The notes under the pieces: model-generated | The model's database searches: none | Told to the model about the DNA's origin: nothing | The model's input: the letters and a program-made list of their open reading frames with translations, nothing else | Shown: positions 1 through 13,283 of the stretch, piece by piece | How positions within the stretch are numbered: the stretch's first letter is position 1 | Layout of the letters: each line of letters begins with the position of its first letter | Made by a program: the position numbers and the translations under genes | From: Trichoplax adhaerens | Lineage: Eukaryota > Animalia > Placozoa | Direction: 5' to 3' | DNA: 64,000 nt | NCBI RefSeq assembly: GCF_000150275.1 | Contig: NW_002060953.1 | Coordinates: 1,461,693 to 1,525,692, forward strand

Positions 1-1010
1 ATTGTTTTCCCATCCCGTTTTAAATTATGGGTAGATATAACTCAATAATGATTATCATATAATTCTACAACTGGAGGAATCATAACAATACTAGCTGTCG
101 TTTAATTTACAATTGCAAGAGAAAAGTAGATGGCAGAACAATCAACAAGTTGACAGATCACAAGGTGGCAGATAATAATTCTATCCAATCTACCTTAGCA
201 TTGTTTGATGCTATTCAAATCATATTAATTATTGTTATCTATCCTTATCATAATGCCCAATAGCATGTTGTGTATTTGATTGACTACCGAATTTAAATGA
301 TAAATTTGTTTGTTTAATTAGTCGACTCGATTGTATATATTTACGCTATGTTCACCTTTCTGATGTGGCAGCAACACCCTCTCGACCAGTATAGTTTACT
401 ACATCATCTTGGATTGACATATTGAAAAGTGGGCAGACATTAACAAGTACTAATACTTATGTTAAAAGGGATATATACCCAAGTTGAGAATAGTATTATT
501 GTGAAGTTGGGCATATTCCTGTTTAGTAAGGTCGTTAATGGATGTGTTTTGACCGATGGTATGTTTTACAGATGAAATGTTATGTAAAGTGTCTTCACTA
601 TCTTGTATATAGCCGTAGAATAATAGTTTACCAATGGGATTACTTGCCTAGGTTAAAATATTGAACTGTTAACATTAACTTGAGAAACCGAACAAAATAT
701 GGAAATTTGTATTCTTCCTAACCACGTTCTAGAATCACGAATAGTGATAGCCTTCTTTTTTTTTATTTAATTTAGCATTTAGGTGAACTGCTTTCCGCTG
801 CTTTTACCCAAAGAGATTGGAAACTTGTACTTCATTTTTTTGCAAGTCATCAAGTAATTATAATCGGAAATGTGTCTTAGCTTGACCACCTAGCTAAAGA
901 CCACTGCTAATGAACTGAAGAAGGAAAGAAAAACAATCTCTTCACGTACTGTATAAACTTATCATTTACGTCACAATTACAACCCTTCCATTCAGCCCAG
1001 ATTAATCGAC

Positions 1011-2165
1011 ATGCAAGTTGTTGTTAAATCGCAATCAGGAAATTTACTGTTGCTCCAAGGTGAAGCCAACGATACTGTTCGTGATTTAAAGGAGAAGTTA
1101 TATTATCATGTACATAATCCGCCATCACAACAACGTCTAATCTATCGTGGTAAACAACTTGATGACGAAAAATTATTAACATCTTATTCTATTGCCAATA
1201 ATGCTTTAATTCGCTATTTACCAGTATCAAAGGAAGAAATTCGATTGAATTGCAACCTGTTTACGGGGCAGTTTCTATCGCTCAATGTTGAGTTAGATCA
1301 AAGCATTTGTCATGTTAAAGAACTGTTACATCAACAAACTAATATTCCTATGGAAAAACAACGATTACTATTAGCTAATAAGCAATTGAAAGATACGGAA
1401 ACATTACGTTGTTATGGAATGCAAGAAAATGATACTATCAACATGGTATTGAAATTACCTCGTCGTATACCTTTACATATTAAAATGAATCATGATAAAA
1501 CTATAACTATTGAAATCGAATCGAATAGTACTGTCGCTGACATTAAAGAAGTGGTGTTTATTAATAATAATATGCCGCCAAATAAACAACGTTTAACGTA
1601 TAACGGGAAAGTCATGCTGGATTCAACAACAGTCGATGACTATGGTCTTAAAAATTATGATACTATCTACATGATACACCGTCGGAAATCACGAAATCAA
1701 GCCGTTATTGTTCAAATGGAAAATGATCAGACTTTAAGTGTACCAGCTAAAGAAGATTCTACCATTCAAGAAATTAAACATTTAATTGAAGAACAAACAA
1801 ACATACCTTGGCGTCAACAACGATTATTACATGATGACGTTCTACTTAATAATTCCTCGACATTAGCTGATTGTCAACTGCAATTGCCTTGTCAATTGCA
1901 ATTATTTTCATCAGATATCTTGCAGATTTATATACGACTTTCAGTGGGTAAGCAATTGTCACTGGAAGTCTTAGAAATGGATAAAATTTATGATATTAAA
2001 GGTAGGATTGAAGATAAAGAAGGCATATCTATTTTACAGCAAACATTACGATTTAAAGGTAAAATTTTGAAAGATCAAACCACTCTAAAGTCTTGTGATA
2101 TCGGTAGTGGGTCTATTCTGCAACTTAAAATTAATGTAGATGATCGAAATTGTTGTGTTATGTGA
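1011..2165 (+). CDS. Intronless poly-ubiquitin-like protein (5 diverged UBL domains) with C-terminal CaaX motif (CCVM)
   Basis: The 384-aa ORF has five ~75-aa repeats with ubiquitin signatures (e.g. QQRLIYRGKQLDD, KQRLLLANKQLKD, KQRLTYNGKVMLD, QQTLRFKGKILKD). No repeat ends in Gly-Gly, and the protein ends NCCVM-stop. TATA-like TATAAA at ~952. Confidence 0.9.
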   Translation: MQVVVKSQSGNLLLLQGEANDTVRDLKEKLYYHVHNPPSQQRLIYRGKQLDDEKLLTSYSIANNALIRYLPVSKEEIRLNCNLFTGQFLSLNVELDQSICHVKELLHQQTNIPMEKQRLLLANKQLKDTETLRCYGMQENDTINMVLKLPRRIPLHIKMNHDKTITIEIESNSTVADIKEVVFINNNMPPNKQRLTYNGKVMLDSTTVDDYGLKNYDTIYMIHRRKSRNQAVIVQMENDQTLSVPAKEDSTIQEIKHLIEEQTNIPWRQQRLLHDDVLLNNSSTLADCQLQLPCQLQLFSSDILQIYIRLSVGKQLSLEVLEMDKIYDIKGRIEDKEGISILQQTLRFKGKILKDQTTLKSCDIGSGSILQLKINVDDRNCCVM

Positions 2166-12230: not shown

Positions 12231-13283
12231 ATGATGAAAGCTGCACAAGTTGTAGAGGCAGGTGCCCCTCTCCAACTTCAAGAAGTCCCACTGCCTAAAG
12301 CCACTCATGATGAGGTTGTGATCAAAGTGATTTCTGTAGGCGTTTGCCATAGTGATCTGCACTTATGGGATGGTGGTTACGATCTTGGTGAAAAAGGATT
12401 CATGAAATTTGTAGAGAGAGGAGGCCATTATCCAGTAACCCCTGGCCATGAAATTGTTGGTAGTGTCCATCAGATGGGTGATGAAGTAGTTGATTTTGCT
12501 GTTGGGGATAATGTTCTTGTATTCCCTTGGATTGGTTGTGGTCAATGCCCGATTTGTCAAGCGGGCGATGACAATGTTTGCGATAAACCGAGATCGATTG
12601 GCATTTTTTGCAATGGTGGTTATGCTGAATATGTTATTATTCCAAGTTATAAATATCTTGCTAAGATTTCTGGTGTTGATTTCCATGCTGCCACATCGCT
12701 TGCTTGCTCAGGTTTAACTGCCTATAATGCAATCAAGAAAGCGAATGTAAGATCTCCAGAATATTTGGTCATCATAGGTACTGGTGGGCTGGGTCTGATG
12801 GGCATTCAATTGGCGAAAGCAACAACTCAAGCGAAAATCATTTGCGTTGATATCGATGATCAAAAATTAAATATAGCAAAGAATTTAGGCGCTGATTTTA
12901 TTGTTAACTCTAGCGATGGCAATGCAGTGCAGAAAATATACTCCATCTGTCCTAAAGGCGTCGATAGTGTTGTCGATTTTGTTAACGCCTCTCCGACGGC
13001 AAAGATAGGATTATCCATACTTAAGAAGCGTGGGAATTTAGTGCTTGTAGGATTATTTGGTGGTTCTATCGAAATCTCTTTAGTGACAATACCACTAAAG
13101 ACCTTAATTATTCAAGGCGCTTACACAGGTACTTATAGGGAAATGGTAGAGTTGCTACAATTGGCCAAAGAGGGGATCATTAATCCAATTATTTCAAAGC
13201 AGTATTCTTTACAAGAGGCTAATACCGCATTAAATGACTTAAAACAGAGGAAGATTGTAGGGCGAGCAGTAATCATCCCATAA
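12231..13283 (+). CDS. Zn-dependent medium-chain (MDR) NAD-linked alcohol dehydrogenase, prokaryote-type, intronless
   Basis: The 350-aa ORF has the catalytic-Zn motifs VCHSD, GHE and LACSG, the structural-Zn motif CGQCPIC..DNVC, the Rossmann motif GTGGLG and an acidic residue (CVDID) consistent with NAD use. Confidence 0.95.
   Translation: MMKAAQVVEAGAPLQLQEVPLPKATHDEVVIKVISVGVCHSDLHLWDGGYDLGEKGFMKFVERGGHYPVTPGHEIVGSVHQMGDEVVDFAVGDNVLVFPWIGCGQCPICQAGDDNVCDKPRSIGIFCNGGYAEYVIIPSYKYLAKISGVDFHAATSLACSGLTAYNAIKKANVRSPEYLVIIGTGGLGLMGIQLAKATTQAKIICVDIDDQKLNIAKNLGADFIVNSSDGNAVQKIYSICPKGVDSVVDFVNASPTAKIGLSILKKRGNLVLVGLFGGSIEISLVTIPLKTLIIQGAYTGTYREMVELLQLAKEGIINPIISKQYSLQEANTALNDLKQRKIVGRAVIIP

Follow-up and report, generated by a model that had tools for sequence, protein, structure and literature searches.

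The window analysed here is a 64,000-nucleotide stretch of the Trichoplax adhaerens genome (contig NW_002060953.1). Near its start, positions 1011–2165 of the forward strand hold a single unbroken open reading frame (ORF) of 384 codons running from ATG to TGA, as read from the ORF listing and its translation. The product, which we call the penta-UBL protein, is composed of five successive ubiquitin-like (UBL) domains and ends N-C-C-V-M, followed directly by the stop. The Pfam profile of the ubiquitin family (PF00240) matched five stretches of the protein, with an E value of 1.1e-80 and 265.8 bits over its whole length, and each of the five segments also cleared the curated cut-off of 25.4 bits when scanned alone; these scans bear out the five head-to-tail UBL domains that a sequence-only reading of this DNA had proposed, as the translation does its CCVM C-terminus. 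The domain bounds lie at residues 1–76, 77–152, 153–229, 230–303 and 304–384, the last of these including the C-terminal tail. In the list below, identities to ubiquitin refer to a repeat of the genome's own six-repeat polyubiquitin gene (assembly G000, contig C1375), and dN/dS, the ratio of non-synonymous to synonymous divergence, refers to the ortholog described in the next section.

1011–2165, forward strand: entire penta-UBL coding sequence in a single exon (384 codons and the TGA stop)
1011–1238, forward strand: UBL domain 1 (residues 1–76); PF00240 58.7 bits; 34% identity to own-genome ubiquitin; dN/dS 0.10; K48-equivalent is K; I44 kept, L8 replaced by Q; Gly-Gly positions are EE
1239–1466, forward strand: UBL domain 2 (residues 77–152); PF00240 64.6 bits; 34% identity to ubiquitin; dN/dS 0.11; K48-equivalent is K; Gly-Gly positions are RR
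1467–1697, forward strand: UBL domain 3 (residues 153–229); PF00240 67.8 bits; 29% identity to ubiquitin; dN/dS 0.15; K48-equivalent is K; Gly-Gly positions are SR; a basic linker of low model confidence occupies residues 226–229
1698–1919, forward strand: UBL domain 4 (residues 230–303), the most diverged; PF00240 50.7 bits; 26% identity to ubiquitin; dN/dS 0.20; no K48-equivalent lysine (V here, I in the ortholog); Gly-Gly positions fall in a gap
1920–2132, forward strand: fold of UBL domain 5 (residues 304–374), the most constrained; PF00240 62.3 bits; 39% identity to ubiquitin and 85% to domain 5 of the ortholog; dN/dS 0.04; K48-equivalent is K; Gly-Gly positions are DR
2133–2150, forward strand: hydrophilic six-residue tail linker NVDDRN (residues 375–380), with the same residues in the aligned ortholog
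2151–2162, forward strand: CaaX box C381-C382-V383-M384, from the translation and the ortholog alignment (C-S-I-M in the ortholog)
2163–2165, forward strand: stop codon TGA; the ortholog has TAA at the unchanged position in the DNA alignment

By alignment, the five domains share 24–39% identity with the ubiquitin of this genome and 16–28% with one another, in agreement with the earlier description of domains diverged both mutually and from ubiquitin. None of the five has Gly-Gly at the equivalents of G75-G76, where they read EE, RR, SR, a gap and DR; the junctions between domains read KEE/I, PRR/I, SRN/Q and SDI/L, and RGG occurs nowhere in the protein. The position equivalent to K48 is a lysine in domains 1, 2, 3 and 5 and a valine in domain 4. 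Two further statements of the sequence-only reading thus stood up to alignment: that no domain ends in the LRGG di-glycine, and that the K48-equivalent lysine is present in every domain except the fourth.

An AlphaFold2 model of the protein (mean predicted local distance difference test score, pLDDT, of 84) contains five beta-grasp folds, with each repeat showing the order beta-beta-alpha-beta-beta-3/10-beta; its predicted template-modelling (pTM) score of 0.34 suggests that there is no fixed packing between domains. A model from the ESM Atlas concurs (pLDDT 0.78, pTM 0.31). In the AlphaFold2 model the last strand spans residues 369–374 and pLDDT falls below 50 both in the basic linker at residues 226–229 and in the tail at residues 378–384; the C-terminal tail is predicted to be disordered from residue 378.

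Because Gly-Gly is missing, and given what the enzymes concerned require, the junctions should be uncuttable by ubiquitin-specific proteases and the C-terminus should not be adenylated by E1. The protein would then persist as one permanent string of 384 residues in which the five beta-grasp domains are independent of one another.

Conservation and origin of the gene

A word-index protein search followed by alignment identified an ortholog (P0002, assembled from three public sequencing runs) that is also 384 residues long and is 75% identical to the penta-UBL protein with zero indels. The contig that carries it runs colinear with the window and shares with it a conserved block some 800 nucleotides upstream, and we infer that it would come from another placozoan lineage. 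It was the only ortholog recovered by word-index searches and among the best 150 of the 18,520 hits of an exhaustive profile search, which could leave relatives below about 50% identity hidden. In that search the protein's own cluster scored 843 bits, and the rest of the best 150 were long multi-repeat polyubiquitin-like proteins with at most 575 bits summed over several matches each. Multi-UBL proteins with diverged domains are numerous, with 698 clusters at E ≤ 1e-30; as far as these searches show, the penta-UBL protein itself is restricted to two related genomes.

Comparison of the two coding sequences gave a dN of 0.149, a dS of 1.34 and a dN/dS of 0.11, with constraint on all five domains and the strongest on the last (see list). 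The DNA alignment of the coding sequences is 76.3% identical without gaps, and its differences fall 79, 35 and 159 times at codon positions 1, 2 and 3, respectively. Conservation is bounded by the ATG and the stop: identity is 43.5% over the 200 nucleotides 5' of the ATG, 81% over the last 200 nucleotides of the coding sequence, and 52%, with 48 gapped columns, over the 200 nucleotides after the stop. This confinement argues against a longer coding region upstream and against splicing past the CCVM stop, an outcome that the sequence-only reading had named as one that would count against it; in this pair of sequences, conservation instead collapses right after the stop. The open frame reaches just 18 codons upstream of the ATG (402 versus 384 residues), and in both species a purine occupies position −3 of the start context. 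An exon of a larger gene is thus not supported. Judged by this pattern of substitution, the penta-UBL gene is a real, functional gene under purifying selection.

Its origin appears to lie in polyubiquitin, since solved polyubiquitin chains align without a gap to residues 1–225, so that the head-to-tail repeat length of some 76 residues is retained, and four domains (1, 2, 3 and 5) match ubiquitin best; for domain 4, ubiquitin comes to within about 3 bits of the best match. Across the AT-rich genome (105,631,681 bases in 1414 contigs), tandem ubiquitin-fold arrays comprise the true six-repeat polyubiquitin gene and the penta-UBL gene, and no paralog of the latter was found. The simplest history suggested by these alignments is the duplication of a five-repeat polyubiquitin gene, whose repeats then diverged independently.

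The resemblance to a polyubiquitin precursor of the UBB/UBC type accordingly extends to head-to-tail ubiquitin folds that recur roughly every 76 residues without linkers, and to an intronless coding region. The differences are those of product and end: the repeats of a precursor are copies of ubiquitin, exact or nearly so, each ends in LRLRGG, at which deubiquitinases can release monomers, and the last closes with GG and one capping residue, whereas those of the penta-UBL protein have the low identities to ubiquitin and to one another given above, RGG is absent from every junction and from the end, and the chain closes with a CaaX box. Without RGG at any junction or end the protein cannot supply free ubiquitin, and we rejected its identification as a polyubiquitin precursor: its repeats are not ubiquitin and the RGG sites are absent. 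A functional, polyubiquitin-derived and non-processable five-domain protein is, on this comparative evidence, very probably what the locus encodes.

C-terminus and predicted prenylation

Proteins prenylated at a CaaX box have a cysteine at −4, a permissive a1 position and an aliphatic a2 position, and Met, Ser, Gln or Ala (or Cys) at X favours farnesyltransferase; CSIM is the box of prelamin A, and CVVM or CVIM are Ras boxes. The penta-UBL protein ends CCVM and its ortholog CSIM, and both fit this rule, with Cys at −4, an aliphatic a2 and X = Met. Between the two, a1 changes from C to S and a2 from V to I, while the cysteine at −4 (C381) and the terminal methionine are invariant; since the two ends agree at both of these positions, we call the CaaX Cys and Met conserved. 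The CaaX ending with X = M that had been pointed out from the letters alone therefore holds in the one ortholog found. The same reading had named a loss of the terminal cysteines in orthologs as counting against it, and here the two cysteines part ways: the CaaX cysteine is kept, whereas the second (C382) is a serine in the ortholog. Because of that serine, the double lipidation once suggested for this end, in which a CCaX tail is both prenylated and palmitoylated, is not a conserved feature.

The enzymes of this pathway have counterparts in the genome, where a profile search placed prenyltransferase beta-subunit repeats (PF00432) at three loci and isoprenylcysteine methyltransferase (ICMT; PF04140) at one gene. 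Taking motif and conservation together, prenylation of the penta-UBL protein seems rather probable.

A CaaX box at the end of a multi-UBL chain is not confined to placozoans. Within 156 fetched sequences, two other predicted, uncharacterised multi-UBL proteins have good CaaX ends, against a rough chance expectation of about 0.3: a polyubiquitin-like isoform X2 from Lampetra fluviatilis (P0005, XP_078740965.1), which ends CVIL, and an 822-residue protein from a Logan assembly (P0110), which ends CVIS, as do four near-identical variants (P0157–P0160). Both resemble the penta-UBL protein in having diverged, mostly GG-less ubiquitin repeats and in placing the CaaX box 6–8 residues past the last strand, so that this geometry recurs; they differ in having roughly 8–9 domains rather than five. 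The lamprey protein is 27–28% identical to the penta-UBL protein, no higher than to ubiquitin itself. The best match of penta-UBL domain 5 is not among the CaaX-bearing last domains of these proteins, from which we take it that shared ancestry is not supported and that the architecture apparently had independent origins in P0005, P0110 and the penta-UBL gene. The earlier statement that the architecture is not recognisable among characterised animal families therefore survives in part: no multi-UBL protein with a CaaX box is described in the full-text literature searched, which likewise yielded nothing for placozoans, and the arrangement is nonetheless not unique, as the CVIL and CVIS proteins show.

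A membrane-tethered adaptor and its alternatives

We read the penta-UBL protein as a lineage-restricted, non-cleavable five-domain chain that is farnesylated and acts as a membrane-tethered adaptor, and give this reading a probability of about 0.6. In the proposed mechanism, Cys381 would be farnesylated, the last three residues removed and the terminus carboxyl-methylated, so that the end of the last 'ubiquitin tail' would be pinned to the cytosolic face of a membrane. CaaX proteins follow a two-signal rule, in which the second signal is a polybasic stretch or a palmitoylatable cysteine. The penta-UBL tail is not polybasic, and its second cysteine is not conserved, for which reason endomembranes, or weak and dynamic binding, would be expected rather than the plasma membrane. 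There the chain may serve as a multivalent membrane-bound adaptor with domain-specific partners; such partners are favoured over generic ubiquitin receptors because the domains differ from one another and yet each is kept between species.

Several points weigh against this reading. The conservation of the CaaX box is that of only two sequences, and the last four residues of the protein might be kept simply by lying where constraint is strongest, in domain 5 and the tail. From the last strand (residues 369–374) to the cysteine there are only six residues, which could limit access of farnesyltransferase, and a lone farnesyl group without a second signal has weak membrane affinity. The adaptor role itself is a guess that names no partners.

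Were the CaaX-like end incidental, the protein could be soluble and non-lipidated, residing in the cytosol or nucleus as a scaffold or in delivery to the proteasome, in the style of ubiquitin-fusion degradation (UFD) or of FAT10. The K48-equivalent lysine, which both species keep in every domain but the fourth, would suit such a role, as would the mere six residues before the cysteine, the presence of FAT10 as a weak match among solved structures (E about 1e-12) and the great number of diverged multi-UBL proteins that have no CaaX box (within the 698 clusters mentioned above). We consider it unlikely all the same, as the cysteine at −4 and the methionine are invariant over a dS of about 1.3 while the middle positions have changed to CaaX-compatible residues only, the position of the stop is exactly conserved, and the tail is hydrophilic and predicted to be disordered, like those of real prenylation substrates; most of the I44 patch, the surface recognised by proteasome receptors, is moreover lost.

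The loss of that patch bears equally on the proposal, made in the sequence-only reading, that the protein mimics linear polyubiquitin and acts as a membrane-anchored scaffold or decoy for ubiquitin-binding proteins or the proteasome; in the form weighed here, the chain mimicked is M1-linked and the generic readers are UBA, UIM, UBAN and NZF domains and proteasome receptors. At the positions of L8, I44, H68 and V70, domains 1–5 read QIRL, FLNV, NTYI, ELQF and SRQK, a patch that is partly hydrophobic at best in domains 1 and 2. The M1 and R72–G76 residues at a junction are contacts of linear-chain-specific readers, and M1 of the proximal and R72-L73-R74-G75-G76 of the distal unit are replaced at every junction of the penta-UBL chain. 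The spacing of the chain is identical to that of linear polyubiquitin in the gapless alignment, its junctions are uncleavable without GG and it has a CaaX box, all of which a mimic might share; with domains 16–28% identical to one another, however, it is not a repetitive ligand. The proposal is weakened accordingly, and we now hold it to be improbable.

It is scarcely credible that the locus holds no functional gene of its own, being instead a polyubiquitin retrocopy or pseudogene in decay or a single exon from something larger: the coding sequence has no introns and an identical protein is absent from the records of the other assemblies searched, but a dN/dS of 0.11 with all five domains constrained, and a 1152-nucleotide frame free of indels and stops in two diverged genomes whose synonymous sites are near saturation, rule out a decaying retrocopy, and the conservation from ATG to stop, with its 18 further open codons upstream, leaves little room for a larger gene.

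Relation to known ubiquitin-fold proteins and neighbouring features

MUB proteins were reportedly described by Downes et al. in 2006 as membrane-anchored ubiquitin-fold proteins. UBL3/MUB is the sole characterised family of prenylated ubiquitin-fold proteins (PMC1847700, PMC6158211, PMC4996978). Like the penta-UBL protein, its members have a ubiquitin fold, do without conjugation by GG and end in a prenylation CaaX box that is kept in orthologs, as CCVM and CSIM are here; the CC pair of CCVM recalls the CCVIL of UBL3. They differ in having one PF13881 (Rad60-SLD_2) domain, where the penta-UBL protein has five PF00240 domains, and in that X is usually Leu, for geranylgeranylation, where it is Met in the penta-UBL protein with a second cysteine that is not conserved. 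None of the five domains matched PF13881 when scanned alone (E ≤ 0.01), and the whole-protein PF13881 match of 26.3 bits lies beneath the much stronger PF00240 match. The genome also has a UBL3/MUB-like gene of its own (L007, G000:C1410:4405613-4408771, minus strand), which is single-domain with several exons; reading the exons singly rather than as a joined model, the first of the matched exons gives a PF13881 hit and the final exon ends GGCCTIL. By its sequence this CCTIL end is a geranylgeranyl-type CaaX box like that of human UBL3. With a separate UBL3 gene in the genome and no domain matching PF13881, we rejected the penta-UBL gene as a UBL3/MUB ortholog.

FAT10 (UBD) and ISG15 are likewise fusions of diverged UBL domains that deubiquitinases do not separate. 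They have two domains, a terminal GG for E1 activation and conjugation, and no CaaX box, whereas the penta-UBL protein has five domains, no GG and a CaaX box; a modifier of this type was rejected, given the CCVM end without GG. A third likeness, to ATG8/LC3 joined to phosphatidylethanolamine, is an analogy of mechanism only: there, a tail lipid keeps a ubiquitin fold at the cytosolic membrane face, where the protein recruits partners, as is proposed for the penta-UBL chain. In ATG8/LC3, a single-domain protein, the lipid is phosphatidylethanolamine, placed reversibly on an exposed Gly by an E1/E2/E3-like cascade. What is new in the penta-UBL protein is less the lipid-anchor type of ubiquitin fold, which is already known, than the combination of five domains, apparently derived from polyubiquitin, with a CaaX box, which is undescribed in the literature searched.

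Ubiquitin-like signals are normally written and erased enzymatically. A five-unit chain that could be neither cut nor conjugated and was fixed to a membrane would instead amount to a constitutive, membrane-resident ubiquitin-like signal. Its host belongs to one of the earliest-branching animal lineages, in which the penta-UBL gene coexists with a canonical UBL3, and the gene would be a simple case of a polyubiquitin gene turned to a new function. The lamprey and other CaaX-ended multi-UBL proteins hint that such conversions have been repeated. One speculative and rather doubtful extension of this idea takes poly-UBL chains that are lipid-anchored and non-processable to be a class so far unrecognised, derived from polyubiquitin genes on several occasions: in placozoans, the lamprey and at least one other eukaryote. 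In it, the placozoan member would be a permanent, hard-wired membrane signal, encoded in the genome, that recruits specific sorting, ESCRT-like or degradation machinery without an E1-E2-E3 step.

Upstream of the penta-UBL gene, a non-coding block at window positions 214–330 shares 70% identity with the beginning of the ortholog contigs (L004/L005), against 44–52% in the flanks around it. It lies about 800 nucleotides from the ATG in both genomes, is single copy with stops in all frames, and holds a perfectly conserved 19-mer, ATTATTGTTATCTATCCTT, together with a TTTGATTGACT motif. The block contains no tRNA, Rfam match, coding frame or repeat; it is a candidate cis-regulatory module or non-coding 5' exon. 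Nearer the gene, a TATAAA at 952–957, 54 nucleotides upstream of the ATG, is not kept in the ortholog contig.

Two other open frames were seen in the neighbourhood. Transcribed divergently from the penta-UBL gene, a 278-residue open frame (L008:5695-6531, minus strand) some 4.5 kb upstream of its ATG resembles the initial exon of a multi-pass membrane transporter. Downstream, positions 12231–13283 of the window hold an intronless 350-residue ORF that looks like a zinc-type alcohol dehydrogenase.

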